Shown: positions 4,760 to 46,900 of the stretch, one piece after another | Numbering within the stretch: the first letter of the stretch is position 1 | Layout of the letters: each line of letters opens with the position of its first letter | From: Euprymna scolopes | Lineage: Eukaryota | Assembly (NCBI GenBank): GCA_053919585.1 | Contig: CM132797.1 | DNA length: 64,000 nucleotides | Strand: one strand, 5' to 3' | The notes under the pieces: model-generated | The model's input: the letters and a program-made list of their open reading frames with translations, nothing else | Databases searched by the model: none | Told to the model about the DNA's origin: nothing | Position numbers and translations under genes: made by a program

Positions 4760-5064
4760 CAAATGTCGATCGATGCCTCCGTTCAGTCTTGAAAGACAAA
4801 GGATACCCCCTGTAGGGGCAGCTGCGCATGTAATTGTGAGGCAAGGGTCACGCAATCCCTAGCCACACCTCTCCTGAATCGACACTGTTTGGGTCCAGTG
4901 GCAAGAAGAAGACCAGGACGACTGGAAACAATGACGAGATAAACAAAGAGCACATACAGCACCTGGTATTCCCAAATGGTCACCCATTTAGTACTGACCA
5001 GGCTCAACGTTGCTTAACTTTGGTGATCCAGTGGGAACTGGTGTGTCAACGTGATTATGCCAGA
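4760..5064 (-). mobile_element. 5S rRNA-derived SINE (SINE3-like); 5S head about 4952-5064
   Basis: Minus strand reads ...aaagttaagcaacgttgagcctggtcagtactaaatgggtgaccatttgggaataccaggtgctgta, a diverged 5S with box A/C, followed by a non-5S body. Confidence 0.75.
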
Positions 5065-5399
5065 TTTGTCAAATAAATCAACAATTTAATAGACTACAAT
5101 AATGGTGCAACGAAACAGAGAAATAATCAGACACGATCAGCTGTAAGGAAATGGTTGCACATGATCCTAGAACCATCTGAGTACGAGACAAAGTCGATTA
5201 TACAAAGTTAAACACTATAAGGAGCCCAAAATGGTTGAATAAAAGAAGATGGATATTTTGCTCAAGAGTTTTTTTTTTTTTTGACGTCATATCATTCATG
5301 TGTGTATGGCGAGGAATTCATTAGTTTTTAAGGATAGTTTCATGACAGCACTCTGCAGATTTGGATCAACTGGGTTCCATTGGTTTATTAAAAAAATCT

Positions 5400-6524: not shown

Positions 6525-9500
6525 GTAAGATCACTAACTTATCTGGGCCTTCCTCTTCGACTGGCGCTATATAATCCCATGTTTAACCAAGCGACACTTT
6601 CTTACTTGAATTATTCGCCAAACACGATAGACTTGTTTCGGTTTTCAGCTGTCATTTATGCTTTTTTCTCGTTAACGAATCGAAGAGGTGTGTACAAAAA
6701 ATGGGTTTGTTTTGAATCTAAAAACCTAAAACTGAGCTTTGAAACCATTTTAGAAATAATAAAAAAACCCAACAGATTGATTAGAATTTACTAAAAATCT
6801 CACTGAAATATTACATTGTCTTCAAATATTTATTTGTTAATCCCGTATTTAAATTGGATTCAGGTTAAGTGACATTTCCTCTTTCCATGTTGTCCATCTG
6901 GATATATATTTCGTATTTTTATGTTCAGGAAATCGTCTTAAACTAATATTTTGGGTAAAATATCCCTTAATATTTTCACCTTCCCCCTTTTCAAATGGTA
7001 TATTGGTTAATTCCTATTTCAATCACCTAAATTATTTAGAGGTTTCGATAATACTAAACAACTGTTTTTGTATACTTGAACCATGTTCGGCACTTCTGCA
7101 GTTTAACATTCACAGGCAAATTTAGAAAGCCATTCTTAACATGGAGAGCGGTAGTGTTGCTAATTCTTACGTTACACGGACGGAACCCTTCTAAAATAAA
7201 AACAATTTGCTTGTCGACGGTAACCTGCACTAGTACCCCAAACCCCATGTTCTCGTAAAAAAACGCACAACATTTAAAGGCACTAAATTATACATGTTCA
7301 CTAGACAAAAACAACAATAAAAAAACAAAAACGCCATGTCTGAACAGAGGCAAGCTAAGGAAGAACGATAACTAAACGTTATACTTTTTTTGTAGACGTT
7401 ACTATGGCGACATAAATTATTTTAAAGAAGATAAATTTGGGATATTAGTCAAAAACGATTTATTTTTGGTTATCTACCCCTATGTGACATATTTTTGGTT
7501 ATCTATCCCTATGTGACATATTTGTGTTAAAAAAATTAATAGAAAATATAAGCATGTTAAGTTACTATAATTATTAGATGTGAGTAAAATAAGGAGTCCA
7601 GTCCAGTACCTTACTTCCTAAAAGAACAAATGTCTGACCTTTCATTAATTTAATCACAACTAATATTTACGATAACTTAACATGCTTATATTTTTTATTA
7701 AATGTTTTAATATAAATACATCTCAGAGGAGTAGGTAAACCAAAATGTTTTTGAATAATGTCTTTGTTTTTCTTCTAAAATAATTTGTCACCAATAGTAA
7801 CCTTTATCCTTTTCTACTCCTAGGATTGGGTTACGAACTAGTTATCGTTATTCCTTAGCTAGCCTCGTTCCAGATTTGATTATAAACGTGACGTTTATAT
7901 TTTCCTGGCCTAATTTTCATTTTGTATATATGATGACAGTTTTAATATATTTTTTTTATGGTACTTGTAAGAAATGGTCATAAGAGTCCAAGTTGGTCTC
8001 AGAAAATTTACAGCAAAGAGAACCCCAAAAGCAACGAGGAAAGATGTCTCTCCTGTCTCTGTCCACTGGATGCTTAAGTAATGACTATTTTTACCGAAAG
8101 ATAACTGCTGACAGACCTTTGACATTTTGAAGAACTCTCTATATTTCATTTCTTCACTTGCACATTGTCCAACTTATTTCCACCGATACCCAACGGTGTA
8201 GGTAATTAAATACTTTTGTTGTTATGAAAGAAAGTTTTGTTTTTCCTTTCATGCAACAGTTTTTATTACATGCCACTAATACGTAAACTTATTTATTCAT
8301 CTGCGGACTATTATCCTCATCTTCATAGTTGTTGTTTTACCATGTTTCAGCCAACTATTCCTCTAGCCTTCTTCAGATGGTTAACTACAACGGGACTGGA
8401 ATGCTGAGTCTCTTAACTGTATCCTCAGTAATTGCTGTCTTTCATAGTTGGTGCGTAGGATTGAAACCGCTATTTTCAGACAATGCTCACCTGAATCCAT
8501 GGAGATTCAACGCCTCTATTCACTGCACTATGGACGCACTGGATAGAGATGTTGAATCTCGATGATTTGAATCCTACCCAAAGCAGGCCAGAGGATCAGT
8601 TGGTCAAAACGTGGTGAGACAACAACAACTATGGAAGGCAGTAATTACTGAGGATACAGTTAAGAGACTCAGCATTCCTATCCTGTCACAGTTAACCACC
8701 TGAAGAAACCCAGAGGGATAGTTGGCTGAAACGTTGTGAAACAACAACTATTGTTAAGTTTTGAGACATTGTGTTGAACCAAGGTGGCGGTGTAGTTCAG
8801 ATCAGTAACCAAGATGGCGGCGTAGTTCAAATCAGTAACCAAGATGGCGGCGGAGAATTAAATGCGGTCCGTGACGTAGCAAACGGCGAACTGATTGAAT
8901 CCAAAATTCAACAATTTTTATTATAATTTTGTGACGTTTTCATTGGTTGTTTAGCACAGCCGTTGATTATAAAAATGATTGGCGAATCCATTCGTCTCGT
9001 ACCCCCATCACAAGTCAAAAACATTTTACAACTATAAAGATGAGGATAACAGTCTGCAAGTAAATAAATAAATAAATATACAAATTACTCCTCTCAAAGG
9101 ATTCCAATAAAAAATGATATAATACAAAGAATCTTATTTCATTTCTATAATTCTCTTCCCTTTGATTACAAAATCAAACGTTCATGTTTTCCGTTCTCTA
9201 AGGCACATTCTCATTTTAGAATGCACTGCAATTTCTTAGAACAGGATTTCCCAAAGTGGGTTCTGGAAGCTCTTTCTTAAAGAGGACCAAATGCTTTATA
9301 TGGAAAAATTAAATGACTGCAAACATTTAATTACTGATCTTTTTTTTACTGGAAATAGATATGATACATAACTACAGGTGTAAAGAGTTTCAGGATGGTT
9401 CATGGAAAAGAAAAGAAAAAAATAAATTAACAAAAATGCAACAATTCAATCAAAAACAAGAAAAAGGTTGTAAACATTATCATTATTTTTTGTTAAAATT

Positions 9501-12500: not shown

Positions 12501-15500
12501 CCATTGACTTGTGTGTTGGACAGCTTTTTAGAAATTGACCTCTAAATTAACCTATCTTTGGTCAAATCTTTATTTAACCATCTTTCTCTGACATCCATCC
12601 TGATCACTTCATTCTGGCTCCCCTGTGAACTGGCCCTGCTACCTCGACTGTTCTACATCTACTAACCCAAAACCTTTCATTCAAGCTCATCAAATCTAAG
12701 CGTGTCTTTAAGATTCCCATTACACATCCATTGTATCATTTTCACATCATTTCTATCCATGCTATGCATAGCGATTGTCATGTGACAAGTGCTTGTCAGA
12801 TTTATTGACACAGGAATTTCTCTGACCCATAACTGACTAGGTTTCACTTCCATTCATCACACTGTCTACACATGTCTATTAGACTGTTCTTTTTGTCGAC
12901 GGTGGTAATGCTCTGCTGTGATAATTAGAGTAGAAAATTGGACCCTAGTGACCCCAGATAGAATCGGAGGAAAATTTAAATGCTGCGTTTTTTAATATTT
13001 TTTTGTTTTTGATTATTCGTATTATTTTGATTCTTCGAACTATTGTTCACATCTGGATTTTTACGGCGTTATAGTTCATTTAACCTCTGATCTTCTTCGG
13101 GTGCATCTTGTTGAACTCTGGAATCTGCATGGAATTTAGAACAGGTGGGTAGCATGCTCTTGTTCTGTCAGCCATGATAGGGTAGAAGTCCTAAATAATT
13201 CACAAGTGTATTTTGAGTGTCGCTTGCACTATCAACCTCCGGAAGAGTGTAACATTATAACTGAATTTTATCAAGTACTTTATCCACTATGCCATGGGTC
13301 CTTGTGAAAATATTCCAGAGTTTGACAAGCTACACCTAAAGGTCAAAGGTTACATTAACTGAAACATTGTGAAAACAACACTTGAGATGCGAACAATAGT
13401 CCAAATAAAACAAATATGAATTTAGATGCTGTTATAAAATGCCATGGAAAAAAACTTTTTTGAAAACTTATTGGAATTTTCTTTTAACACATCGATTTCT
13501 ATTGTAACCAATCAAACGCTTTTATTTGATAGACTAGCATGGTTAACCGGCATTGCCCAGGTTGAGGAGGGAGGGATAACAAAACATTCTACAGTATTTT
13601 TTTTTTTATTACATTTTCACCCCAAACAAGGCACATTGCCACTTTGGTGTAGGGGGCTACTATCAGGGGAAACATCTACTGGGGTACTATGTAGGGATTA
13701 GGGCAGCGAGATGTTGGTTCACGTTGCACTTGAACTTATGCATGTCAGTACAGTTGGGGAAGCAGTGACCTGGAATGGAATTCCAAAGTCTAGCTGTTCT
13801 GGGGAAGAAACTACTGGAGTAGAAAGATCTTTTACATCTAGGGATCTCTACAGTGTGGGGGTGGGATTTTGCAGCTTGTCGGGTCTGTCGAGGGTGTTCA
13901 CGTCGTGGGGGCACAAGTGCTTGCAGTTCTTCAGAGCATTCACCATTATAATACTTGTAGAACAGGAAGAGGGATGCAACGTTTCGACGATGGGACAGAG
14001 GCTGAAGCTTAGATGCCAGTTTAGGGCCTATCAGATTTGCGACTCTCTTTTGAACCCTGTCAAGAAGCGATAGACTAGTAGCCGATGCACCGGCCCAAAT
14101 ATGACAGCAATACTCCATACATGGGCGAATAGTGGCCTTATAGAGGTACAGGATACTTTCGGGTGTTAGAAGTTTTCTAGCACGGTAGAGAGAGCCCACC
14201 TTCCTTGCAGTGGCCCTGGCAATGCCCTCGATGTAATTGTTCCAACTCATGTTGTAATGACTGTAAGGACTGAACATTTTTCTTTTCATTTGCTCTCTTT
14301 TCCACTTAAAAATCAATTTAACATAGCTTGTTACATTATAACATCTATCTCTATTCCAAATTTTATAAAAATCTGTCGAGTCATTCTCCAGTCGATTGGT
14401 GCATTTATTTTCAAGGGTTAATGTAATGAAGCCATTTGTCAGTTGAATGATGAAGAATATTATGAGAAGCTTGAAAATGATGGAATGAACAAAGTTTGAG
14501 TTATATTTTATTTGTTTACATTGGCCGCATGATCCCTGATGTTTTGTTTCTAATTTCCTTTTTGTTCTTTATCTTATGACCAATTTTATTTTATTATGCT
14601 TCTAACCACTTTAACATATCTAATTATCTTTCACTTCGTCGTAAAGACTATTACAGACCCATGCACAAACTTGGAGTCTATATTTGTAACATCCTGCCCG
14701 AACTATAATCAGACGACCAGGTCATCATGTGCTTTATAGACTAACTTTAGAACATAGCGTTAGCTACTTATATTTTCTCTACCACTCTTCCTCAGCCCAA
14801 GACTGTACTCTAATCAGTCACGTTTCTGACAACATAGATATAGCACTCTCCCTAGACACTAGTGCCCAAGTAAATATATTTGGTGACTTTAATGTCCATC
14901 GCAATAATTGGCCTTGTTTCTGTAGTTAAACAACCACAGCTGGTAGCATCACACATAACTTTTCTGTATTGCATTCCCTGACACCGACAGTAATGTTCCC
15001 AACTTGTTCCTCACATTGTCAGGACTAGCAAGCCTCACTTCTAGACCTATTTCTGACCACAGTTCCTATTTCTGACTACAGTTCCTATTTCTGACCACAC
15101 TTCCTATTTCTGACCACAGTTCCTATTTCTGACCACACTTCCTGAGGATTGTGTAACAAATGTCCATTGCCCATGCTGATCATGCTGTGATAATGCTAGA
15201 CAATAAACTCTTGACCCAAAGTTTAAAAGCCATTGCTCAAAACAATAAGGTGCTATAACATGAATGGCTCTCATCTTGAGGAGGCTCCATATTTTGACAA
15301 ACTTCTAGGTTTGACCTTTACTCCTTATCTGAGGTGTAACACATACATCAAATCTGTTGCCAAGGTCGCTGGAAAAATGGTGGGATCGTTCTACTGCTCC
15401 AGTAGATATCTCACTGTTGATGCAGTTCTCTACCTGTGTAAGAGCCAAGTATGTCCAAGGATGGAGTACTGTTGCCACATTTAGGCAGGAGTTGGCAGTT

Positions 15501-18500
15501 CAAAATAGACTTTGTAGCCTAGTGGGGGATGCCCTTTTTCTTCCCTGCAATCTTGTTACAAGCCTGTCTCTGTTTTATCGTTATTTTCATGGTAGGTGCT
15601 CGGCTGAGCTCCAGTCTATGCTCCCCTCCTGGACTTTCACAAAAAAACACTCATCTAGTTTAAACCATTATCAGTAGTTTCCCCCACTCTTTATTTGTGC
15701 CTAAACCTAGATGTAGATTCCATGAACAAAGCTTCTTTCTTAGAACTGCACGCCTGTGGAACTCTGTTCTGTTTTCCTGCTTTCCAACTAACTACAATAT
15801 GGTTGTCTTCAAGTTCAATGTGAACAAATTCTTTATGAGCCATCCCCTTATGTAATCCAATTTATCAAATTTCCACTACTAAAGATTACCACAGGTTCCC
15901 CTTGATCACTGTACACTCATTAACTCTTATCGTCGAGTGACCTCTGGGCCTTGATTAGTGGTGAGTCCTTTGTAAAAATAAAAATAAAAAAGGCTGACTG
16001 GGAAGATATCAGGGATCACATCAGAGATGCTCCATGGGGAATTATCTTTTCTCTTCCTGCAGAACAGTGTACAAATGAGACTACTGAATAGTTCAAAGTG
16101 GCAATTACTGCATGTGTTCCCACAATGAAAGTTCTGTAGCAAACAAAACTGTTCTCAATGGTTCACAACTACTTGTGCAGCAGCCATTGCTCAAAGGCAG
16201 CAGGTATACCACAGATTCATCTGACGTAAGTCTTGTACAAGTAGACAAACGCTTATAGAAGGTAGAAGTAATTGTAAGAGAAATAACCACAACTAAGAGA
16301 GAAACCACTATAAAACGCATTGAAGCGCAGAAATTAGGAACTCGTGTTTCTGGAAAATTTATAACAGTGTAGTAAATAATGAGCAATCAACAATCATGAG
16401 GTTGTTTGCACGGCAACCGAGAAAGCTAACATGTTTGCCCGCCAGTTTACCTCCAACTCTACTTCCTCCCAGATTTTCCTTTGCAGACAGAAACCATACT
16501 AGATGATCTGAAAATCACCCCTTCTCAAGTACATGATATCATAAAAAACCTCAAAAGTATGTGGACCTGATCTCATTCTGTCTGTACTATTAAAAAAATG
16601 CTTCACTGAAGTTGCTCCAGTTCTCTTCAAACTGTTCAACTAATGCTTTAACTGATCTTGTTTTCCTGAGTGCTAAAAAACTGCTTTGTGTGGTACCAGT
16701 TTACAAGAATTCTAGTGAAAGAACTGACCCATTAAATTATCGCCCCATTAACCTCCCTCTTTTCGCCAAAATATTTGAGTCCTTAATTAATCAAGCACTA
16801 CTTCACCACCTCACACTACTAAATTTCTGTCAGCAGATTTAGGCAAGCCCGTTCTATAGCAGATATCCTAACTGTAACAGCTGAATCTTTATGCCATGCA
16901 CTGGATAAGGCAGCTGAAGATAGGGCAGTAGCCCTAAATATCCAAGGCCTTTGACATGGTATGGCACAATGGTCTTCTTATGAAAATCAAATCCTATGGT
17001 ATTACTGGACAAATAGTTAACATGATTAAATCCTTCTTAAATAAAAAAAAATTATCCAGTTGTTCTCGATGGTCGTACATCAAAACAATATGATATAAAT
17101 GCAGGTGTGTCAGGGATTGATCCTTGGACCTCTATACTTGATATTCATAAATGACCTCTTTGATAAAATTGTCTCTGAAATGGGTATATTTGCTAATGAC
17201 ACCACACTTTATAACAAATTCAAGGGGAAAACGAATAAACACAATTTCTAGGGGAAGACCTCCAGTCTGTAGGGGAATAGGAACAAAAATAGATGGTAAC
17301 ATTCAATGCTGCCAAGACTAAACTTCTTTCCTTCAATAACTATAATAAACCTTCTCAATCACTAATAGCCATGGCTAATGATACATTACCTAAAAGTATT
17401 TCACTTAAACTCCTCAGCTTAATATTCACAAGGACATGAGTTGGAATAGATACATTGAGGGCACTGCCAAGGCTGCACAAAGTTACTTATACCTGAGAGT
17501 ATCCTGTACTAGGCTGTCACGCTTAAATAGGGTTCAAAAGAGAGTCACCACTCGAATTAGGCTTCAATCTCTCATTGATGAAATGTTGCATCCCTCTGTT
17601 TTACAAGTATTTTAATGGAAAGTGCTCGAACGAAATTCATGCCCTTGTACCCCTCAACATAAATACGCCCGACAAACCCGACAAGCAGCTAAATCCCACC
17701 CCTATGCAGTAGAAATTCCTAGATGCCAGAAAGCATTCTACTCTAATGGTTTCTTCCCTAGGACGGCTAGACTTTGGAATTCCCTTCTGGGTTCCTGTTT
17801 CCCTGACTGTACTGACATGCAGAAGTTCAAGTGTAATGTAAACAGACATCTTGCTGCTCAATTGCTTCAATATCCCTGCAACTGATGTTCTAGATATGAG
17901 GGGCGTGCAATAAGTAATACCCCTGACCCACTTCCAGTTGTCTGATCTAGCTGAAATTTTGCATATGCAACGATTTATATCTCTACGGGCTATGTGGCAA
18001 ATTACAGCTCTGAACTAATTGTGGTTTCTATTTTACAGGTGTTTGAACTGAGTCAGGTGTGAAATGGAACCTGTTGAATGTCGAGCAGTGATCCGGTTTT
18101 TGTATTTGAAAGGACGCACACCACAGGAAACTTTTGATGAAATGAAAGAAACTTATGGTGATAATACCCCATCATATGACCTTGTAAAATGCTGGCATCG
18201 TGAATTCAAACATGGCCGGAAGTCTGTAGAAACAGCTCCCAGACCTGCCCCCCCCCCCCTTCTGCTATTGATGAGGCATCTGTCGGTCAAGTTGAGGCTG
18301 CCATTTTGGAAGATCGGTGCATTACTATTCGCCAAATAGCCCAAGATGTCAAGATTAGTACAGGGTCTGTGGAAACTATCATTCATGACCATTTGCATAT
18401 GCATAAGGTGTCTGCCCGATGGATTCCCAGGTTGCTCACATCATTCCAGAAGCGAGAACGCGTCGAGTGCTCGAGGATGAATTTAGAGATGTACCAAGAA

Positions 18501-21500
18501 GATGAACCAAAGTTTTTCAAAAGACTGATTACACAGGATGAAATCTTGGTCCATCACTATGATCCAGAGACCAAAGCCCAGTCAATGCAGTGGAAGCACT
18601 TGGACTCACCACCGCCAAAGAAGGCAAGGATGCAGCCCTCCACTGGCAATGTCATGCTCACAGTCTGGGACCAGGACGGAGTAGTGATGACAGATTTCCT
18701 GGCAAAGGCTACCACAATTACAGGAGCCTATCATGCTTCACTTTTGGGGAAATTAAAGGAAGCTATCAAAATCAAGAGGCGGGGCAAAATCAGCAAAGGT
18801 ACCCTCCTCCTGCAGGACAATGCTCCAGTCCACAACTCGCATGTCGCCAGATCAGAAACACGGGCGTGTGGTTATGAAATCCTTCCCCATCCTCCCTACT
18901 CTACTGACCTTGCACCCTCTGACTTTCATCTCTTCCCAGCCATGAAGTTGTTTTTGAAAGGAAAGCGTTTCCCAGATGATGCAGACTTGATTTCTGAAGT
19001 CACGTCGTGGTCGGAGGACCAACCTGAGGTGTTCTACAAAAATGGTCTCCAGAGCTGCATCAAATGATGGGAGAAATGCATAACTCTGGGTGGTTCATAT
19101 GTAGAGAAAGACTAATAACTGTGCCAAGTTTCGTTGCTCTACTGCTATGGGAAGTGGGTCAGGAACATTACTTATTGCACACCCCTCGTAGTAGCTCCCT
19201 ACATCAAAGTTGCACTGTGCCTTGTTTGGGGTGAAAATACGAGAAAAATAAATAAATAAAAATTTTGTATGTTTTAAATGTTATGTCATTTGTTCATACA
19301 TTTTGCTTAAAAAAATAAAATTTCAAATTAAAAAAAAATCTCTCAAGCTTACAAAATAAAAAAAATTATAAATAAAACGTTTTTAATTACATCTATGAAA
19401 ATCAGTGTGTGTGTCGTTTGTTTAAAATTCAACCAGAAATAAAAGAAAAGGAATAGGGTGTCGATCCAGAATGTGTCCTCTTGGTATTTGCTGATTATGG
19501 AGTGCCTCAAGTCTAATTGATCCATAATATTATATACCACTCTTCTCATATAAAAAATCTTTCAGTATTCAGATTGTTGATTTTTCAGATATTAACACCC
19601 AAGCTTCTCTCTTTTCACCATCAATGCTTTGATGTTTTGCCTGTCGAAATGAATAACTTTCTCCTTAATGAATCCTCTTGTTTTGATAAACTCTTTGAAC
19701 TGACTTTAACTCCACATCTCAAATGAATGATGTATATCCAATCTGTTGCTAAGATTGATGGGAAAAATGGTTTGATTTCCTTGACTGACTCCATATGTTA
19801 CTTAAGATGTATGTAAGGTGCCACTCGGAACACGCTTTCTTGTCATGACATAGTACAAAAGTAACTTTGAAATGATCTCTTTTTATCACAGAAGAGACAT
19901 AGCTAGTCTTTCTCTGCTCTGTTGCTTTCATGGAAGGTCCTTGCCTGAGCTTCAATCTTTGATTCTTCCTGATGTAAGACATTCACATTAAGAACTCGTT
20001 TTCTATCACAATAGAAAAAGACTTTCTTGTTTTTCTCAGTGTGCCTAGTGTCAGGCGGAATTTCCAATGACAACGCATCTTTTAAATGTTTCCGTTTGTG
20101 GAACACATTACCACAGGACTGCTTCTTTGCAAGCTGCAACATGGTCGTCTTCAAATCCAATGTTCATAAATATTTGTCATAAACTGCTCCATAATTTAAC
20201 TTAATTCATACCATTTATTTTATTAATTTATTTTTATTTTGGACTATTATCCTCATCTTTATTAGTTGTTGTTTTTTTACAACGTTTCAGCCAACTATTC
20301 CTCTGGCCTTCGTCAGGTGGTAACCACGACGGATAGGAACCTCGAATCTCCTAACTGCATTCTCAGCAATCACTGCCATCTGTAGTTGTTGTTGTCTTAC
20401 CACGTTTTGGCCAAGTAAACCTCTGGCTGGCAGTTACCACCTGACGAAGACCAGAGGAATAGTTGGCTGAAACATTGTAAAAAAACAACTAATAAAGATG
20501 AGAATAGTAGTCCAAAATAAAAATAAATTAATATATATAATGCTCATCTCAAAAATGAATTCCAATTAAGGAATAATGTATATATACCATTTATTGTCCA
20601 TCATTTCTACACCTCATTAATTCTTATCCTCTAGTCACTCTTGGCCTTGATAAGTGGTCACCAACATTAAAAAAAAATCTAATGACTTCTTCAAATCACT
20701 CTAAATGTTGTTGGGCAATGAAAACCTTTCTTTTTTTTTTTTTTAAATTATGTTTTGCTATCCACAATTAAACCAGATTAATCCTGTCGGTGCACATTCT
20801 CCGGGTTTTTTTTTTTCATTCACATTCACCCCTAACAAGGCATATCGCTACTTGGACGTAAAAGGGCTACTATTTGGAACCACGTCTAGGAAAGATTAAC
20901 AAGATGTTAGTTTAAGTTGCATTTAAACTTCTGCATATGAGTCAGGGTAGCAGGAAAGGATTTCCAAAGTCTAGCTGTTTGAGGGAAAAAGTTATTAGGG
21001 TTTTCTGGTATTCAGGGACCTTAACAGTGAAGGAGTATGATTTTGTTGCTAGATTCTTTGACAGTTTTCTGAGCTTTACTACTTCCATGCTGCTCATGAC
21101 AAATTGGAAGTGGGCATTTGTGTGTGACACCATTACAAAAAGATTAGGATCTCTATCCCATTTTGTTTTTCAATCCATCCTCCCCACTTCCATGGCTGAG
21201 GAACTCCACCTACCCCCTGTATAGTGACCCCTCCCCCAGAATATGAGAGAGAAGTTAACAGATGCTACACCATGTTCAAGAGGTACCTGGAACTGTGCAA
21301 AGTAGGGCATCCCTGAAATATTGTACATGCCTTCTTACCTGAATGCCTGGTAATCCCAAATGGTCACCCATCTGGTACTGACCAGGCTCAACATTGCTTA
21401 TCTTTGGTGATCAAATGAGAACCAGTGTGTGACCATGGTTATGTCGTATATATCTATGAAAGATGTGTTTTTTTTTTTGTTTTTTTTTTACAAAGGAGTT

Positions 21501-22903
21501 ACCCTTTAACGAGGTATGGAAGCCTCTCGAGGATAAGGGTTAATGAGTGGGAAAATGTAATCGTAAGTAGTGGAAATTTGGTAAATTGTGTTACTTAGGG
21601 GGATGGCTCATCAAGAACTTGTTTACATTAGACTTAAGTAGTATCATGTTGTAGTCAGCTGGAAAGCAGGAAAACGGAAGAGTTCCATAGGCGGGCAGTT
21701 CTAAGAAAGAAGCTTTGTTCATAGAATCTACGTTTAGGTTTAGGCACAGATAAAGTGTTGGGGAAATTATTGATAGTGGTTTCAGCTAGACGTGTGTTTT
21801 TTGTGAAAGTTTGGCACGGGGGGGGGGGGCTTATCTTGGCAGGTTTCATTGCTGATTCTCTATTGTTAGTTGTTCAGACTCCAGAAGCACCGGTTGACCT
21901 CAAATTCACCACAAAAATGCCTGCAGGTGTGAAGCGACGGCTATTAACTGTAATGAATGAATATGTAATATGAAGATAATTTGTTATCAGAATGCCACCT
22001 CATGCTGAGTGAAATTGCATCTCGTTGAAAAGATGACAGAAGAAAACGCTGAACTGTCAAAGGTTATAAAAGTCACCATTTTCTTGCAATAACTATTGCA
22101 GAGGTTACCACTCATGAATTTGATTACAAAAACACAACGGGTATTGTCACAAACATGGATGCCAACCAGGTGTAACCCAATGTGCAAATTGACAGAAAGA
22201 TATCTACCTATTGCTACTCTTGTCATTCAACATTTATATCCCTTCCCTGCTAACCTTTATTTCCGAAAAGCAAACTTTTATAGCTACAGATGGCACAAAT
22301 AATCTATAGTCTTTTTCCATCTCTCTTTTACATTCACCCAGTCTATTGATAGAAAACCAACAGTTACAATCTGGTTATAAATATAAAATATAGAATTAAA
22401 GAAAATATTACCTGCATTTGGAGCGTTGCATATATTTTGAAATTAAAGAATTATGTATATAAATACATTTGGAAGGCTAGAAAACGATGCATATCTATAT
22501 ATCTATAAAAGTGACTGTGTGTGTGTGTGTGTGTACATTTCCCTACACAATAACTGTCGATTTTTAAGTCTACAGACTCGAAATTTGATATACAGGGTAC
22601 TGAGATTTGGGAAAATCTTTGTGATCGATTTTTGGTCAGAAATTTGGCATTTAAGGGGTCAAAGTTTTGACCTTTTGAGAACTTTACCAAACTCCTCCGA
22701 CAATTTTGGTTTAAACACTTGAAATTTTTGATATAGGTTCCTTGGACATGGATCTAACTTAATAACTTGATTTGAGCCAAACAATAAATGTTAAGGGGTC
22801 ATCATAGAGGTCAAAGTTAAAAAAATTGACCGTTTCTTCTTTTTTTTTTTTTTTGCTCAACATACACCTCCAAACACCCGGGCAACGCTGGGCTGAAATG
22901 CTA

Positions 22904-22951
<48 letters not shown>

Positions 22952-31900: not shown

Positions 31901-34900
31901 ATTTAGTTTTACTTTTATTTGTTGCATATCCTCAATGCTATGGATATGGGTGTGTCTGCCTTTCCTGAACTGGAACTATTTTTCTTGTGACTGTGATTTG
32001 ATGTAATGAAAAAAAGAAAAAGATTTTCAGGACTCCTTCTCACCAACACCGCAATTCATACCAACACTTAAACCATAATTCTCAACTCTCAACAACTATG
32101 CTAATTCATCCTTCTTCTAGTTGATATTCCCCTCACATGCAAATTAATACCATATATAAAGAATTCATCTACAAACTTAAGTTTTTCTTCTTGTGCCTTT
32201 CTCGATTCTGTCAACTGACAGGCCAACTAGGGGTGCTGCTGCTTGTGTATCTTCTATTACACTTGAAGATTACGCTCTTGGCCATAGTATACTGTAGACC
32301 CCCTCCCATTTAAAATTTAGATTTTTAAAGAATAAAAAAAAGAATTTCTGTTGCTCACTGAAGAAACAATTGAAGAACTAAATTACAAGAACATAAACCT
32401 TTTTTTTTTTTTTTTATGAAAAAATTCATAAATGCTATTCGATTGTCCATTTTCTAACACCTTTAGTAGTTGGTGAGTTTAGTTGTTTGTTTTCTGTGCT
32501 TTAAGGAGATAACAATTATCATCATATTTAGTTTAACGTCCATTTTAAATGCTGGTATATATTAGTTAGCTTTTAGAAATTGACTTTGAAACTAACCTAT
32601 CTTTGGCCAGGTCTTTATCCCTCTTTCTCTCGTATCCTTCCTTTAGACTTTCTCTCATGTTGGTCCCCCAATTTATCAGAGAGGGACTTAAGTTTTCAGT
32701 GGCGCCTGTGCTTCCGTGCGCCCAGACGATTGCCAAATGACCGTCCATTAGTTTTTCCTGAAATTTTGCCACAAATTGTATTTCATTAAATAGATGTGCA
32801 CAGTAAAAAAATTGTTTTGCAAAAATTCCCGTTGCGTCCCCAGGGGCTCAAAAGAGGTCAAAAATGCCCCAAAATGATACGTTTTGCCCCATAACTTTTG
32901 ATCCATCTATTAGATTTTTCTGAGACTTGGCCAAGATATGGAGCCCATTGTTCTTAATATAAATTCAGTATGGGTTACCCTGGCAAAATTCTGGTTCACG
33001 TCCCCGGAGACTTAGAGTGCTAAAAATGCCCCTTTTTGTGGCTCTTTTTCATATTTCTCAACAAAAACTTGATGTGTCTGACTATATAGTGGTTTTTCAT
33101 GGTGGTCCACTCAAATATATGTGTTAAGACCTGAAACTGCACCGTTTTCAATTTACACTGGGATTCGGCATATCTAGTGGCTCAAAAGAGGTAAAAAATG
33201 TCCCAAAATGGCTAAAAATGACACTTTGCCCCATAGCGTTTGATTTTCCTTGCCAAAATGTTGAGGCCATTGTTTTTAATATTAATTCAGTATGAGTGAC
33301 CCTGGCAAAATTCTGATTCGCATCCCTCTGGGACTTTTAGGGTTAAAAAAAATGTGCCTTTATGGAGCTCTTTTTTTCATATTACTCAAAAACTTGATAT
33401 TTTGTCTATATAGTGGTTTTCCATGGTGCTGAATTCAAATATACGTCCTAAGGCATGAAACTGAACCATTTATCAATTTTCACTGGGATTTAGTATTCCC
33501 AGGATATCAAAAGGTGTCATAAATGCCTCAAAATTGCAAAAAATGACAGTTTTTACCCCATAACTTTTGCCCCATTAATTAAATTTTCCTGAAACTTGGC
33601 GAAAATGTGAAGGCAACGTTGGCCCTTCACACTTCTCACATTCATCATTTTTTCACTATTTTTTTGTTGCATCATCTCACATGCAGCACCAGAGGGAAAC
33701 CACACGCGTGACTTGTTTACTTAATGGACCTCTATCAAGTCGACAAAATACAATTGAAGAAGGTTGGAGATTACATTAACTGAAACATTGTATAAATGAC
33801 ACTCAAGATGAGAACGGTAGTCCAATGAATCCAATTGTTACAAATGTTTTGATAGCTTATTTAGTATTTATTTTTTGAAATGATTTTTGTCAAAAATTTT
33901 AATTTTATCTTGTATTTTCCTGAAATTCTAGACCTTGATATTTGTTGTTAATCTTCTGATCTCGATATTTGTTGTTAATCTTCTGATCTCGATATTTGTT
34001 GTTAATCTTCTGATCTCGATATTTGTTGTTAATCTTCTGATCTCGATATTTGTTGTTAATCTTATGATCTCGATATTTGTTGTTAATCTTCTGATCTCGA
34101 TATTTGTTGTTAATCTTCTGATCTCGATATTTGTTGTTAATCTTATGATCTCGATATTTGTTGTTAATCTTCTGATCTCGATATTTGTTGTTAATCTTAT
34201 GATCTCGATATTTGTTGTTAATCTTATGATCTCGATATTTGTTGTTAATCTTATGATCTCGATATTTGTTGTTAATCTTATGATCTCGATATTTGTTGTT
34301 AATCTTCTGATCTCGATATTTGTTGTTAATCTTCTGATCTCGATATTTGTTGTAAATCTTATGATCTCGATATTTGTTTTTAATCTTATGATCTCGATAT
34401 TTGTTGTTAATCTTATGATCTCGATATTTGTTTTTAATCTTATGATCTCGATATTTGTTGTTAATCTTATGATCTCGATATTTGTTGTTAATCTTATGAT
34501 CTCGATATTTGTTGTTAATCTTCTGATCTCGATATTTGTTGTTAATCTTATGATCTCGATATTTGTTTTTAATCTTATGATCTCGATATTTGTTGTTAAT
34601 CTTATGATCTCGATATTTGTTTTTAATCTTATGATCTCGATATTTGTTGTTAATCTTATGATCTCGATATTTGTTGTTAATCTTCTGATCTCGATATTTG
34701 TTGTTAATCTTCTGATCTCGATATTTGTTGTAAATCTTATGATCTCGATATTTGTTTTTAATCTTATGATCTCGATATTTGTTGTTAATCTTATGATCTC
34801 GATATTTGTTGTTAATCTTATGATCTCGATATTTGTTGTTAATCTTATGATCTCGATATTTGTTGTTAATCTATGATCTCAATATTTGTTGTTAAGCTAT

Positions 34901-37900: not shown

Positions 37901-40900
37901 ATATTTGTTCGTTAATCTTCTGATCTCGATATTTGTTCGTTAATCTTCTGATCTCGATATTTGTTCGTTAATCTTCTGATCTCGATATTTGTTCGTTAAT
38001 CTTCTGATCTCGATATTTGTTCGTTAATCTTCTGATCTCGATATTTGTTCGTTAATCTTCTGATCTCGATATTTGTTCGTTAATCTTCTGATCTCGATAT
38101 TTGTTCGTTAATCTTCTGATCTCGATATTTGTTCGTTAATCTTCTGATCTCGATATTTGTTCGTTAATCTTCTGATCTCGATATTTGTTCGTTAATCTTC
38201 TGATCTCGATATTTGTTCGTTAATCTTCTGATCTCGATATTTGTTCGTTAATCTTCTGATCTCGATATTTGTTCGTTAATCTTCTGATCTCGATATTTGT
38301 TTGTTATAATAATTCCTTCGATCATTTAAGATTTCTTTTTTTTTTTACATCCCTTTAATAATCAATTCCTTTTTTGTATTTTGTCTTTTAATTTTAGATT
38401 TATGACCAATATTTGAACTTCATCTGCTTGGAAGATGACCTGTATACATTGCGACATCAAGAAAGAGATGCCATATCTTATTATGGTAATCATGTTTCTT
38501 TGCATCTCAAATTTAAATAAAACTTAATTTAAAAACATTCAATGACTTAGAAATGAATAAGTATCTTTGCGAGCATTTATTTTGTTAAATTTATTGTTTA
38601 TGAAAACGTCTTATCAGTTTCACTAAAAAATGTTTAATTTTTACTACAAAATAATTTTTCAAAGATAAAACGTATTTAAAAAATTTTTTTTTATTTATTT
38701 ATTCCAGCAATCAATCGGGGCCAAGTTGATGATAAAGAGATGGATACGATCATGGATATTATTACTGACAGTTTATTCTCGGTATTTGTAACATTAGGTA
38801 AGTATTTTTTTTCATTCTTTTATTGTAAGTATTTTTGTTTTTTTTTGTAATTTGTCTTGACATTAAAATATTTTCCAAATTTTGAGATGGGGATTTCCAA
38901 ATATTATTTGGATTCTTTTAATAACATTCCAACAGATGGTGCAATAAAGTGCAAAGAAATAAATAGTTCTAAATAAGTCTTTTGGAAGTTGAAGGTTCAA
39001 TCCTTAATACAGGCACTATTATGAATATAATTAAGAATTTTATCCGGTCATGGCTGACAGAATGAAGACGGTCTATCCCGTGGATTACTTTTGGCAGCCA
39101 TTTAACTCTTACTTTCCTTATATTGTCCTTTAGACCTCACATTCCAGGAACAATTCTTCTGACAAAAAGGTAATAATTGCTGTTTTATAAGTCAGAATCT
39201 ATTCCATCTAACATTTATCGTTGGCAAGTTTTTGACCTTGAAATCATATTTTTTTTTTTTTAACTCCTTACATCAAGTGGCTTCATGCCTTGTCTGGAGC
39301 AATTTCTAGTAAAAAAACAAAAACAAAATAAAAAGTACAGTTCAAAATTCCATACAGATTCCCAGGTTCGACAAGAGACAATTGAGGTCAAAGATCATAT
39401 TGGCCAAAATGTAAGAATAGTCCAAATAATTTGAATCGTATAAAATATGTATATTTAATGAATTGTTATAATCTTGGTTTGAAATGACTATAATCACATT
39501 GACACACTAGTTCTATAAGATCACTACAGTTAAGATTGGGCCTGTACAGTACCTTATGGGTGATTATTTGGAAATCAAACTCTCTTTAAAAATTAATCTA
39601 GAAATCATTTCTATACAAAAACACATTTTGACATACAATAATCCAATGATAGTTGACATGCTGTTAAAAAACTTTGACAAGTAGATTGAATAATCACCAT
39701 ATCGTAACATATTAGTTATTCTAAGATATTTATTATCTAGAGGATAAATATGAGTGTCTTTGATTCCGACATTAAAATAAGATAGAACCGATTTACATAT
39801 ATACAAACAATATATTTATTATGAACAATGGAAAAAAAAAACATAAGACCATATGTGTGCGTGTACACATGTGATCAGCCATAGTTCTGAAATGTGCATT
39901 AATGTTGTAGTGAGATAAAGTGTTCATTAATTTTTATGGTGAAATTAAGTTAAACTTACCTCGAATATTTGCATATGTGTACAGGTGGAAAATTGTTCCT
40001 TGCATGTGTGTATTTTTTGAGCTACTCGTATCGTGTGTATTCATTGTCGTGTCGAGGTGAAAAGAAAGAAAAAAGAAACAGAAAGAAAAGGTCAAAAGGA
40101 ATTGACGGTATTTTAGCTTTTCTCTCTGTTCTGTTTTACTCCGCATCACTTAAGATGTCGACCACTTACAATAATACAAAGATGTTTTTGTTATGAAATG
40201 GATTTGTAAGTAGAAACGCTCAAATATAAAGAAATAATTGGATGAAACGATTTTATGCAGATCATTAAGAGTAATGATTTATTTAAACAAGTCGCATCTG
40301 AAAGGAATCACTTTGAAAACCAGTGTCGGTGTTAGCGTTCATTGAATTATTGTTTCTGTTTATCACTTTGTCAAAATACAGGCAAAAAAACTGCTTTAAA
40401 AACTGTCTTTGGAACAAGGGAGATAACTTTTGCATACGAAGTTATTTCCCTTTTAAAAATATTTAATTTCCTTTAACTATAAAGTATTTGAAAGGTTCAT
40501 TTTCTCTGACATTTTTCTTGTGCAGTGATGTAAACACCGTTTTCTTACAAAGGATCCAAAATTAGTAATTAAAGCATTTTCCCGATTGAGTTGATCACTG
40601 ATGACAGAACACAAATATTTTATTTTCTTCTTTCAGGAATGGCACCTATTATCCGTTCTCCTCGAGGCAACGCAGCAGAACGAGTTGCAGAGAAACTTGA
40701 TAAAAAGCTCCGGGATAACATCAGAGATGCCCGAAACAGTTTATTTACCACAGACAGTATTCAGGCTGGCCAGTTTAGGTAAATTCACATATACAAAAGA
40801 CAACCATCAATATATTTTTTATTGTTTTTAATTTTTTTCTTTTTTTTTTCAGTTTATTGTGAGCATGTTTTTTATTGGTTTCATGGCATATCAACTTTTT

Positions 40901-43900
40901 TTTTTTTTTAAATATTCAATACTGCAATTCATTTATATACTATTAGGCATGTTAATAATTTTAAGTTTTCTTTTCTTTCACAAACTTTCCTGATTACTAA
41001 AATATCCAAATTTTGCGTCTTATATCAAAATAATTCTGTTGCTATCTTCTCTTTATGATTTGAATTTGCACCTGTATGTGTTCACTACACAAGATGTGAT
41101 TGTCTGCTCGTTATGCTTTTGTGGTCTCTGTTGATGCTGCAAAAGATGAATTCTTTCTTCAAATATAATTTATAATGTATGTTTGCGCCTCCAGCTACTT
41201 ATGTAGGTAGGGAAGGTGTATATATGTCACCTGCAAGAGTTCTTAGAACATGAAATACAATACAACGGCCAATGTGGAGATACAAAGATATAGCTTTTCT
41301 CATGGTTGGAACTGTTTCATGTCACCTGATTCCTGGACCTGGAAATAACTGAGGTACAACCACAATGCGATGAGGTTTATTTATTTATTTAATTTTTTTT
41401 TTTTTGAGAATCTTTATTCTGATTCCTCCGAACGGTGGAAAAACCTCTTCACAAGTGACCAGCTATTTCCTCTTCATCCCAACCATTACGCTTCTTTTTT
41501 TTTTTTTTTTTTTTTTTTTTACATAGGCATCACCACATTATCAAGGCCAAGAGGCCACTCAAGGATAAGGGTTAAAGAGTGTACAGTAGAAATTGGACAA
41601 TATAGTAATTATTAGTAATGAAAATTTGGTAAATTTGATAACTTATATGGAACGGCTCATCAAGAACTTATTTACGTTAGACTTGAAGACAACCATATTG
41701 TAGTCAGCCGGAAAGCAGGAAAACGTAAGACAATTCCACAGGCATGCAGTTCTAAGAAAGAAGCTTTGTTCATGGAATCTACGTTTAGGTTTAGGCACAG
41801 ATAAAGAGTGGGGGGAATTATTGATAGTGTTTACAACTAGATGAGTGTTTCTTGTGAAAGTTTGGCGAGGGGGGACCATAGATTGAAGCTCAGTCGAACA
41901 CTTTCCATGAAAATAACGATACATCAGAGACAAACTCGCAACATCTCTTCTGTGAGATAGAGGTTGCAAGGAAGAGAAAAGGACATCTCCTACGAGGCTA
42001 CGAAGTCTATTTTGAACTCTATCAAGGCAGGCCAAGTCCTTTCTAGCTTTTTCTTCATTCTTCACTTCTGAAATCAATCATCTCGCAACTCTGGCCGAGA
42101 TTTGAACCAACTGGACTGCAAAAACTGACCGATTCCAGTCCGACTAGATGCTCTCTGACTGACTAGAAATGCATGTGCACCCTCTATTATATTAAGGTGT
42201 ACGTGTGGGATGATAACATTGTTAACCAGTTCGCACTCAAAATGCACTGACCTACCTCGTGACCCCTACTAGCACACAGGTACGTGTCATCAATCGATGT
42301 CAACAAGTTTGAAGCCTGTCAGTCTTAACCTTTTGACCTCTCTGTACTTAACTTGAACATAAGCAAGTAGGTTCAAGCTTGTACCACGTTAACCGCGTTT
42401 ATGACACGCAACGCACTGACCACGCTAGAATTTCAACATGGTCAAGAAGATGTAGGAGAATAATGGCATATGAGTTTTGGGTAAGGTAGTTAGCCAGGAG
42501 GGGCTGGAATAATGTAACACAACAAAAGACGTCTGCAGAAGGCCAGAGATTTCAAAGGCGAAAATGTTATAAATATAGACATCATGATGAGGAATGCAAT
42601 CTGAAATATGCAAAATTGCAACGCCATCTCCACCAAGAAAATGGTTTATTGCAGAGAAGGAAGGGATGTTCTCAACTTCTTTACTAACTTCCTGGATATG
42701 AAATTAGAATTGCCTTTGATGGAGAAATCAGCTAAGGAAACAATATTTGAGATGTAAAGGAGAACTTTAATGAAATATTCGAATATCTATGGATCTCATA
42801 TAGAAATCAAGTGTTAACTCCAGGAAGGTGACCCCTTGATTTCTGAGAATTTCAACAGAAATAAAATGAAACAAAACGTTGATAATCCTTGAAGTTTTAA
42901 TCTACAAGTCATTTGAATGCGTGAAGTAATTTTCTGTAGAATAACTGAAAGGTTAAGTTATCATCATCATCGGTTTAATGTCTGTTTTACATGATGGCAT
43001 GTGTTGGACAGCTTTTAGAAATTGACTTTCACGTATCAATTTCCCATATGTTTATTCCTTGACCTTTTCCTGCCACCTCAACGGTTACTAATGCAACAAC
43101 TTTCATCGATTCTTTAAATACAGCCTTACCATTAAAATCTGTTCTACACACATCTTCCTAAAATGTGCAGATTTGACATCCATCATATCATTCTTGTGTC
43201 ATTTCTTTCCATGCAACGCATGTCCTCAACACTTTCTTTATAGGTTTCATTCCCATACATTATCACACTGTGTACACGTGCCTGATAGACTTTTCTCTTA
43301 GTCGATGATGACAACGCTCTGCTGGTTAGTAGGGCTGTGACAACAGCATATTCTTTTCATTGTTTTGACTCCTGAGTATATATCCGTTAATATCTTATGT
43401 TTTTATATATAGTGATGTGGTTCTCGGTTGATTGACTGTGTTTTAGTGTGTCGGATATATACTTGAGAGTCAAAAGAATGAAAAGAATATTCTGTTGTCA
43501 CAGCCTTAGCAATGACAGAAATTCCTTGAACTTCATCCACTCCTAACTCTTGTAATCATACCAACATCAGCTTCTCGTTGTGATCCACTGCTATCATCAA
43601 GATGTTTGTAATATTGATTGAACATCGTCCCCATTTAAACATTAATGTTGTTGATGATTTGTTTGTGTATGCTGATATTTTCTATGTATTTGATGCTGAA
43701 ATATGTGCACCAATAAGCTTCCTATTTGAATATGGGAAACATCTCGGTGTGGATGAGAATTGAATCTGAAGAAAGCCAAAAGATGCATTGATTGAAATGG
43801 TTGCATTGAGAATAATAGTCTGAAGAAACAAAAATAAAATTGACTTTATTTGAAAATCCGCAACTTGTAACTGACTTTTTATTGTTTCTTTTTAGTTTCC

Positions 43901-46900
43901 AGAGACCTTTGCTCGTCATTCTTGACCGAAATTTGGATTTAGTTTCTCTGTTGCACCACACCTGGACATATCAAGCCCTTTCCCATGATGTCTTGGTAAT
44001 TATGCAAATCTTTAAATATATTTTTTTCTCTCTCCCTCTCTTTCCTTACTCTATATTTATCTCTTCTCTTGTCTCTCTTTCCCTCTCATTCTCCCTCTTC
44101 CCCTCTCATTCTCCCTCTTCCCCTCTCATTCTCCCTCTTCCCCTCTCATTCTCTTGACCCACTCTATCTTTCCCTCTCTCTTTCTCTCCCTCAATCCCCT
44201 GTTTCTATCACCCTCTTTCTCTGTATCTATATGTATCTCTATTTTTATGTGAACTAGCTTCAAATTACAAATTTCCTCAGTAGTCAACATGGATGGTGGG
44301 ATTTTTTGTGCATCTACAAGTAAGTTTAGTGCTTGAAAAAAAAAAAAAAAAAGAAGCAAATCAACTTTTTAAATTGAACTTTTGAAAACAAATTCTTAGT
44401 AAATATGAAAGTTTTCTTCATGAAATGTCTTCTTATTGATCTTTCTTTTATCGCTTATGTAGCTGGTGTCAGTTTAGGATCAAATAATCAGAAAACAAAT
44501 CTTTTTATTATTTTGCTGAACTCCATGAAAACATTGCGCATAATCTTTGATATTAATTGTCCATATATTTGCATATATCCCACTTGGGGCTCATGGAAGA
44601 TATTAACTTCTCAAAAGTGATTATTTAGCACGTCTTGTAGGGCTAAAGTCAATGCTGGAAAAGCAAGAGTAAGATCGCTTCAGGTTCTGCTAAGAATATA
44701 ATAAAAATTACTTGAAATTTCTACCTGATTGTGGCTGATGAAGCAATAAGTCCTGTGGATTAAATAAAGGTTTCAGTTGGAAATTCCATTGCTGAGTTGC
44801 ACTAGACATATATGGAAAACGTTGGAGTTACATTGTCATAATAAAGCTAAAGTTAAGAACAATTGTCCAAATAAATGAAATATTTTATTTTTAAACAACA
44901 GGATCTTCATTCTGTTGAATATTTTTTTGGTGATGATTCATTCATAGTTAGATTCATTGGTTTTGATCTTCTGATTAAATTGTACCCCCCCCCTTCTTTT
45001 TATTCCTTTGAACTTTGAACTCTGCAGATCTTTCAAGCTGCACTTTTTGACTAGTAAAGGGCAGACAAGACATTGTATGGTCTTCCTTTCCAAATTTGCT
45101 GATGGTTGTAGCTCAATCTGGTTATAGTGACTTTTCATCATCCTTTTTCTGTTTTCAGGAAATTGAGTCTTTCACTGAACTTAAAGTGCCTCTGAACTAG
45201 AAGGGAGGATTTCAGGAGGAGGTATTTCCATGTCAGCAGAAGTTATTCTCTATCCATTTGGTCCATAACTGCAATCTGGTCTCCTGAGATGTTAAGAGCT
45301 GAACATGGCTGAAAAAGTTTCTTCTGACTTCAGTCATTGAGACCTTGAACGAGATAGTGTTCATCAATGGAGATGTTTGTGATCTCCACTTGGTAACTTT
45401 CCGTCTCGCATCTGCAGATGAAAAGATAAAAGTTGAAGTAGGCTTCAGTCAACTACTAATTAAGCCGCAAGGGTTTTACTTGTTTTTTTTTATACTCTGA
45501 TCAAGACATATTGCAACTTGGAATATAAGGGGCTACTATTTGGGGTCGTGTCTAACAAAAGATTATGGGGAGTTGAGTAGCAGGATATCTGTTCATGTAA
45601 CATTTAAACTTCTGCAGATTAGAATAGTCAGCAATAGGGAGGAAATTTCAAAGTCTAGCAAACCAAGATTTATGTTGAATCTAATTTATTGTCACAAGTT
45701 TAGCTTTTCTAAACAGGGCATGCATACTCCGAAGAGGAATTGTACTCACTGTTTTAGACTCCTCATCATCAGCAGGAGAGTTTTAATCCTTAATTCATCT
45801 TAAAATAAACTTGTACTAAAATAGAAACTGTCTTAATTTTCCTCTCAGGATTTGTTAGTTTTCTGAAGAAACTTTTTTGCTGTGATTAAAGACTTACTTA
45901 CATCAATTAGTCTTCTTTAAAATTTTGATTATAGGGCCAATTATAGGGAAGAGTTTTATAAAATAGTAGAATACTATTTAACGACTATAACATTGAGCAA
46001 TTAAGTATTGATGCTTTATAAGTGTAATCGCATAATTATAAAATCTTATTGGTTTTATTTTATTAATGTGATTTTATGATTATCTTTTTAAATCTTAACA
46101 GGAATTTAATCTTAACAAAGTGGAAATTGAAGAGAACTCTGAAGTGTTATCACCGAGTGGCAGCACACGGCCGAGAAAGAAGAAAAAAAATTACGCTTTT
46201 AGTTTTTCTGATAAATTTTGGCAGACACATAAAGGAAGGTAAGAAAATACATTTAAAATAGATTCATCATCATTGTTATAACGTTTATTTTATGTTGAAT
46301 GGATTTTAAAAATTGACTTCACAACTAACCTTTCTCTGGCCAGGTCTTTATCCCACTTTCTCTTAAATATATTTTTATACCCACCATGTTTTCTCATGCT
46401 AACCCACCTTGCTGCCTAAACTTTTCTACTTCTACTAACGCAAGCACTTTTACCCATTTTTTTTCAATGTGACCAAACAAACAAAGTCTCCTGGTCTACA
46501 CACATCTTCCTCCGAGTTCATCAAATTGAAGCCTTTTTAAGGAGAGTAGAAAATGGATCTTGGGTTTACTTTCAGCAGCTGCGTAACTTTCATTTCCCTT
46601 ATTTTGTCCTTTAGTCCTCACATTCCACGAGTGATGTTTCTGACAAAGAAGAAAGAATTGCTGTTTTCTGGGTCAGACTCTATTCCATCTAACACTTATC
46701 GTTGGCAAGTTTTTGACTTTGAAGCAATATTTGATTTTTATTTATTTTATTTTTTTCAGCTCTTTACATCAAGTGGTTACATGCCTTGTCTAGAGTGTTT
46801 TCCATAAAAAAGACTCACCTTACATATCTATTGCATCATTTTCATATCATTCCTCTCTATGCAACACATATCCTCAACCCTCACTAGTGAGGTGTCACTT

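Follow-up and report, generated by a model that had tools for sequence, protein, structure and literature searches.

Penelope-like elements (PLEs) are the closest described carriers of the hammerhead-like motif considered here. According to the published description of their minimal ribozyme (PMC4209133), it has the type-I order without helix III, a palindromic ACGU after GAA, an unpaired nucleotide, a G10.1-C11.1 pair and a palindromic 15.2-16.2 pair, stem I being short and stem II longer; it lies near the 3' end of elements encoding a reverse transcriptase (RT) and a GIY-YIG endonuclease, and is present in thousands of copies that are mostly single or oppositely oriented, the opposite-strand pairs often being 100-700 bp apart. 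The stretch analysed, 64,000 nt of contig CM132797.1 of Euprymna scolopes (hereafter the window), contains about eight decayed copies from two short mobile element families, termed A and B, which are like these elements in the form, number and arrangement of the motif; aligned genomic copies indicate that the majority sequences of both families have all of the published features. The window copies are very probably dead members of non-coding retroposon families that are copied by a PLE reverse transcriptase-endonuclease. Minimal hammerheads in PLEs and in their short derivatives have already been described, and in that regard the present case is another example. A 2016 paper by Lunse and co-workers, cited in PMC6765202, reportedly also concerns PLE minimal hammerheads. 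The interest of the case is that, in a large mollusc genome, a complete short element can be followed back to the end region of a PLE that has a reading frame, and that elements without any reading frame display the full PLE signature, i.e. foldback, one-sided optional tail and single target-site duplication.

Two other systems are similar in part. As summarised in PMC6765202, the Sm-alpha and Sj-alpha elements of Schistosoma are likewise short and non-autonomous, combine an RNA polymerase III (Pol III)-type promoter with a type-I hammerhead, and reach high copy number in the genome of an invertebrate in which PLEs are found too. Sm-alpha is often arranged in tandem, and its hammerhead is a canonical one that makes loop-loop contacts and whose activity is proven (Ferbeyre 1998, Laha 2000, via PMC6765202). 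By contrast, the A/B motif is minimal, its copies are mostly solo or head-to-head, and its activity is putative. Animal retrozymes of the non-LTR type (LTR, long terminal repeat) (PMC7229834; 10.64898/2026.07.22.740005) are also non-autonomous and hammerhead-bearing, and an origin from PLE pseudo-LTRs (pLTRs) has been proposed or shown for them. Their defining features are tandem repeats and abundant circular RNAs, whereas here tandems are rare and neither circles nor cleavage ends were seen; moreover, they are reported to be depleted from introns (10.64898/2026.07.22.740005), whereas A and B copies are found within and near a Sec1-family gene.

Hammerhead module of families A and B

The hammerhead-like pattern in the window is real and above chance. 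The pattern CTGANGA-N(8-36)-GAAACRTT has three exact matches (8700+, 20281- and 20441+), compared with 0.07 expected from shuffles, and the tail GATGAGNANANTAGTCC, with up to two mismatches, has eight (8305-, 9039+, 13037-, 13386+, 20241-, 20497+, 31004+ and 33807+), compared with 0.45 expected. A first-pass annotation, made from the letters of the window, had reported recurrence of the motif at the positions discussed below and a GATGAG-type tail after most copies, and both are indeed present. It regarded many copies as mutated in the core; in fact every window copy is mutated, each with at least one disabling change, so none is an intact hammerhead, and not one in the window passes a strict minimal-hammerhead descriptor.

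The limits of the window elements were set by BLAST with full members of A and B from other parts of the genome, a 5.9-Gb assembly in which a first look gave at least 2,154 candidates for A and at least 2,959 for B; 30 loci per family were aligned, and the genome copies scored are 87-93% identical to those in the window. Both types of element are ~300-400 nt long, with a common plan of head, body and 3' module. The head, of ~90 nt in both families, has an A-box-like TGGCGCAGTGG and a B-box-like GGTTCAATCC or GGTTTCAATCC. The bodies are family-specific and unrelated between A and B; the 3' module is homologous. In A it reads CAC CTGA(A/C/T)GA A GGCCA-10 nt-TGGCC GAAACGT(T/C) GTG, and in B the halves of stem II are GGTCG and CGACC, with CAC/GTG again forming stem I. 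As RNA the module would thus comprise stem I (CAC/GTG), CUGANGA, an unpaired A, stem II of 5 bp and GAAACGU, with U or C next. Behind the hammerhead is a ~40-nt tail holding GATGAG..TAGTC and then an optional extension of 32-35 nt, present in 10 of 30 A and 13 of 30 B copies.

The two stem subfamilies of the first-pass annotation correspond to these families in that A and B differ in stem II, but the stem sequences need correcting genome-wide. CAC/GTG is stem I in both; TACAC/GTGTA, proposed as the alternative, was found in only four of 30 sampled B copies. GGCCA/TGGCC stands as stem II of A, but that of B is, at the genome level, GGTCG/CGACC and not ggtt/aac. The alternation GAAAC(G/A)TT is also present, and is CpG decay of GAAACGTT.

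The majority sequences, from 30 copies each, hold every core nucleotide in A and in B, and in the sampled loci 14 A-type and 10 B-type motifs pass the strict descriptor. Among the 46 hammerhead positions, conservation in family A is lowest at N7, H17 and C11.1. Hammerheads tolerate variation at the first two, and C11.1 is variable because of CpG decay. An alignment was made of 68 natural motifs: four from the window, 30 each from A and B, three from the PLE family P1 described below and one from a third variant, 'C'. In it, the unpaired A between A9 and 10.1 is invariant; the 10.1-11.1 pair is G-C in 43 of 67 rows and G-U in 19; and the 15.2-16.2 pair is C-G in 45 of 67, the remainder being mostly CpG decay to C-A. 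GAAACGU leads directly into H17 and stem I, the helix III loop being absent, so that catalysis would take two motifs paired via the palindrome ACGU.

Stem II is paired in 94.6% of alignment cells, and each of its five pairs is altered at both positions between families (A, B, C and P1). The structure as a whole is 82% paired, compared with 13-48% in shifted-partner controls, and no shuffle reaches the observed pairing. Intact copies fold with stems I and II and an open core, those at 8695 and 30944 in the window do not; RNAcofold of two copies gives domain-swapped dimers and is uninformative on the 4-bp ACGU helix. The first-pass annotation's description of a high-copy non-autonomous family with a Penelope-type minimal type-I hammerhead is supported.

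Two further hammerhead families were observed elsewhere in the genome. A third A/B-like form with stem II GGCCG/CGGCC is at L002:2702-2747 (minus strand), and another type-I motif, with a 6-nt palindromic helix III (ACGTGT), is on the minus strand of locus L021 at position 800 of the reverse complement. Loci L023/L026 (G000:C11:6797400-6797633) have a ~125-nt hammerhead-bearing family A unit in tandem duplication.

Probable Penelope-like partners and mode of insertion

No PLE-type RT or GIY-YIG reading frame was found in the window, in line with the first-pass annotation, which had reported none attached to the motifs there. Genome-wide, at least 15,395 GIY-YIG candidates are present. The dominant PLE family, P1, is apparently young, with frames of about 800 aa, and has RVT_1 and GIY-YIG domains in one frame. 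Its 3' end, ~460 nt past the stop, reads CTC TTGAAGA A GCCCG-7 nt-CGGGC GAAACGTT GAG, followed by 38 nt, an optional 29-nt tail (in 16 of 23 copies) and then (TA)n. The motif is identical in 20 of 23 sampled copies, and the other three each have one or a few changes at other places of the motif. Unlike in the described PLE motifs, core position 3 is U instead of C, with G8 kept (L032-L060, e.g. L050:910-952, minus strand). The P1 3' end has the same architecture as A and B without sequence similarity, and A- and B-type 3' ends, looked for behind P1, were not found there; no A or B boxes were found in the P1 3' untranslated region (UTR).

A tblastn search with P1 gave an endonuclease remnant adjoining a B copy at locus L072, and a genome search with this remnant led to a second PLE family, P2, at 90-92% identity. 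At L072:1779-2531 the P2 endonuclease coding remnant is fused directly to position 112 of family B, which is the boundary of head and body. This was rejected as the true endonuclease-to-B junction: the other P2 copies part from L072 exactly at that point, no other scored copy has the junction, and the locus is a one-off chimera, which may be a product of template switching. Ten P2 3' regions, i.e. the endonuclease end of the element, were sampled. In seven of them the end of the reading frame, which aligns to the P1 GIY-YIG domain (E 3e-8), leads into an AT-rich UTR of ~170-200 nt, behind which stands a complete B, including head, body, hammerhead and tail. Judged by these alignments, family B is the terminal region, the last ~390 nt, of P2. 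A parent with RT and GIY-YIG domains, to be looked for according to the first-pass annotation, was in this sense found at least for family B, with a GIY-YIG frame and a whole B at the 3' end. The P2/B motif differs from the described PLE hammerheads in being downstream of a tRNA-promoter-like head within the PLE terminal region.

The manner in which A and B copies are inserted also points to a PLE enzyme. Features of PLE insertions are an inverted, 5'-truncated adjoining copy and an optional tail of 30-40 bp at one end (Craig et al., PMC8557442). The PLE protein cuts and extends both DNA strands, and reverse transcription starts at two internal sites, the interval between which is the optional tail (Frangieh et al., PMC11167929). 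An inverted 5'-truncated copy is present upstream of the main copy in 12 of 30 A and, depending on the probe, 10-17 of 30 B loci; downstream of it, such a copy is found in none of 30 A and three of 30 B loci. In the window a single 12-bp duplication, ATACCATTTATT, encloses the whole of foldback A2 (around 20220-20583), which has the optional extension at one end only. The A/B foldbacks, lone target-site duplication and optional tail match the products of PLE enzymes, with P1 also targeting a microsatellite as in described PLE insertions (PMC8557442, PMC11167929). By contrast with those insertions, A and B are elements of ~300-400 nt without a reading frame, and a microsatellite target is not evident for them.

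The tRNA-promoter-like head of B is also present in P2, its partner. It is possible, if on balance rather doubtful, that P2 is a PLE spawning its own short interspersed nuclear element (SINE): a ~390-nt B RNA, made from the Pol III promoter-like head, would be copied in trans, A and C would be further products, and the hammerhead-tail module would be the PLE counterpart of the tail that SINEs derive from long interspersed nuclear elements (LINEs). The head may act as an internal Pol III promoter, letting the terminal part spread in a SINE-like manner. The hammerhead may be kept in master copies as a 3' module used by the enzyme, or for trimming multimeric transcripts, with the inserted copies expected to decay neutrally. 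The 5' ends of 30 B copies placed on the P2 reference are spread, but five fall within a 6-nt interval at the head start, compared with about 0.5 expected under uniform starts; four of the 30 extend into the P2 UTR. A tRNA-promoter-like head in a PLE terminal region, with apparent SINE-like offspring (here P2/B only), is apparently new beyond the literature searched. Such a head suggests a route to SINE-like offspring, and bears on the purpose of PLE hammerheads.

Competing explanations, RNA reads and the host gene

Several observations weigh against A and B being hammerhead elements copied by a PLE. Neither in the window nor in 15 loci did the Rfam hammerhead models give a match, whether at the gathering score or at E<=10, a miss that is expected because those models include helix III, absent from the minimal form. 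Seven of 30 A copies have G at position 17, which hammerheads do not tolerate. The covariation cells are not independent, with ~4-5 between-family changes beneath them, several at CpG sites; given so few events, the compensatory changes in stem II back the hammerhead structure in a supportive rather than strong manner. The heads resemble tRNA genes at the level of the boxes only, as they were called neither by ARAGORN, run on 15 loci of family A, nor by the Rfam model for tRNA, and sense-strand T4 runs are nearly absent from the elements, which is weak evidence on Pol III. A search within 1.5 kb of 30 A loci yielded no PLE reading frame; that family A depends on the same PLE or a related one can hence only be inferred, the grounds being its homologous module and the insertion signature in common. 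PLEs with catalytic mutations in the hammerhead still insert in vitro (PMC11167929), so that a role of catalysis in mobility is at most putative.

The RNA reads are to be set alongside these points. Two polyA and two single-cell runs from the same species were mapped at 85% likeness on locus L009, which has B copies and, on its minus strand, an A motif that is intact. Read depth over its SINE parts is 400-1,100 in both orientations; no piles of molecule ends were found near the predicted L009 cleavage sites, and reads run through GAAACGTT/GTG. There were no unit-length back-joints among the best-supported joints, but polyA and single-cell libraries are poorly suited to circles. The reads thus give no support for cleavage, yet are no evidence against dimer-dependent or low-level cleavage; RNA-seq of an active PLE likewise lacks ends at the cleavage site (PMC11167929).

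The first-pass annotation had also called the elements 'retrozyme-like'. Non-LTR retrozymes are propagated by tandem transcripts that are cut at the hammerheads on either side, closed by ligation to small circular RNAs and copied to DNA, and several features of A and B could be taken in this way: the few more-than-unit head-to-tail cases with a unit of ~430 nt (L021, L030, possibly L005 and L015), the 125-nt hammerhead-unit tandem at one locus (L023/L026), the duplicated degenerate hammerhead unit inside family A, and the derivation of animal retrozymes from PLE pLTRs in a 2026 preprint (10.64898/2026.07.22.740005). This origin is nevertheless improbable, and the term is not supported. Head-to-tail tandems are absent from the window and elsewhere are found at only 2-4 of 30 A and two of 30 B loci; inverted pairs are common, and solo and foldback copies dominate. 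The motif is the minimal form without helix III and not canonical type I, and the RNA reads have neither cleavage-site ends nor, among the best-supported joints, circle joints of unit length.

Still less credible is the proposal that A and B are ordinary tRNA-type SINEs dependent on a LINE, in which the hammerhead-like string is fortuitous and non-functional. The genome is rich in SINEs, with 5S-derived ones in the window, and both the box motifs in the heads and the lack of Rfam matches and cleavage signal would agree with such an assignment. B does share its 3' end with an autonomous partner, but a PLE takes the place of the LINE: the whole of B stands behind a GIY-YIG PLE frame in seven of ten copies. 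Moreover, the unrelated P1 sequence has the same motif architecture at the same distance from its 3' end, stem II has compensatory changes, and the foldbacks and optional tail are PLE-specific. The 129-nt inverted arms of one window foldback, with 86% complementarity, and the 12-bp duplication around the A2 pair might suggest foldback or miniature inverted-repeat transposable element (MITE)-type DNA transposons with the motif by chance within terminal inverted repeats. That is the most remote of the alternatives, given that each arm is a 5'-truncated copy of a directional element whose 3' end is shared by solo copies, that the inverted partner is upstream in 12 of 30 and downstream in none of 30 A copies, that A2 has an extension at one end only, and that arm lengths are unequal (318 versus 109 nt in foldback B1). 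Retroposition of A and B by a PLE enzyme is thus the preferred explanation.

The first-pass annotation raised the possibility that sense-strand copies cut intronic RNA of SCFD1. Its gene assignment is plausible: exons of a Sec1-family gene are at 28019-28156(+) and 43876-44001(+), the best solved-structure match of the latter being Sly1, the SCFD1 orthologue of yeast (E 3e-5), and the host gene may on this basis be regarded as an SCFD1 orthologue. The B copies B2 and B3 are intronic in this gene in sense orientation, and both are core-mutated. Cutting of host pre-mRNA is not supported, because all sense copies of the window are defective in core or stem and RNA reads, mapped at L009, pass the cleavage sites without a pile of ends. 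The foldbacks do not enable cleavage either, because helix III needs a second copy in the same orientation and foldbacks give none; a transcript of a foldback has one sense motif, which the partner arm would sequester in a long hairpin. The window copies are expected to cleave no RNA, and for annotation of the locus are dead repeats rather than active ribozymes in a Sly1/SCFD1-like gene.

Window copies and neighbouring repeats

Foldback A1 has an inverted left arm at 8277-8533(-), defined by BLAST to full A copies and by inverted repeats, that is 5'-truncated within the tRNA-like head; its hammerhead remnant, at ~8338-8380(-), has a C15.2/A16.2 mismatch and G at position 17. The right arm, at 8533-8751(+), was recognised by BLAST and a direct repeat and has lost its fold: the motif at 8697-8738(+) has an intact core and a broken stem II (GG to AC). 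Upstream of this motif is a degenerate hammerhead-like unit at 8576-8626, which with 8698-8748 forms a direct repeat, i.e. an internal copy of the family A unit. A foreign insertion of ~280 bp at 8752-9030, with ACAACTAT at its flanks, splits the tail of the right arm, and contains a 30-bp tandem duplication at 8777-8836. The copy at 8640-8751 is not truncated, its tail picking up again at 9028, past the insertion. The resumed part, at 9028-9121(+), identified by tail match, inverted repeat and BLAST, consists of tail, an (AAAT)n run and an optional extension ending ...CTCAAAGGATTCCAATAA.

Foldback A2 is bounded by its 12-bp target-site duplications at 20208-20219 and 20584-20595, evident in the sequence. 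The inverted arm, at 20221-20427(-), and the direct arm, at 20430-20586(+), were both located by BLAST and an exact core match, the latter also by its tail, and the optional extension is at the end of the direct arm only. The motif at 20278-20319(-) is the best-preserved of the window copies, with all core nucleotides and GAAACGTT kept and stem I down to 2 bp; in that at 20438-20479(+), 15.2-16.2 is mismatched as C/A and stem II has a single A/C mismatch. If transcribed, the A1 arms at 8325-8453 and 8623-8751 (129 nt, 86% complementarity) would form long RNA hairpins, as would those of A2. As double-stranded RNA, such head-to-head arms might be substrates of editing or of small-RNA pathways; at the foldback arms the RNA reads could not tell editing from family divergence.

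Of the family B copies, the inverted arm of foldback B1, at 12986-13303(-) by BLAST and tail match, is old, being about 63% identical to full B copies, and its hammerhead, at ~13065-13105(-), has U4C and a damaged GAAA box. The direct arm, at 13308-13416(+) on the same evidence, is 5'-truncated, with a remnant at 13331-13372(+) bearing G5A and A9G and a tail at 13386-13402. The solo copies B2 and B3 are likewise 5'-truncated. B2, at 30901-31071(+) by BLAST, tail match and alignment, has A9G and G12A in its remnant (30946-30991(+)) and keeps the tail and optional extension; B3, at 33735-33844(+) by BLAST and tail match, has C3U in its remnant (33748-33793(+)) and a tail at 33807-33823. Weak BLAST matches mark a strongly decayed family B trace with internal deletions at 39326-39430(+), a 29-nt BLAST match plus a tail-like ...TTGTCCAAATAAAT mark a very weak B-like trace at 44761-44875(+), and BLAST gives a weak trace at 38978-39062.

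Other repeats in the window include 5S-rRNA-like sequences at 4951-5067(-), 21335-21448(-) and 28396-28512(-) (Rfam 5S_rRNA, 48-70 bits) and at 39480-39589(+), the last at only 23 bits. These are probably the heads of 5S-derived SINEs; no hammerhead module was found in the downstream parts of these SINEs in the window. Two transposon remnants are unlinked to the hammerhead elements, i.e. a mariner-type Transposase_1 domain at 18306-19067(+) (E 5e-18) and an RVT_1 domain at 52632-53192(+) (E 2e-26).

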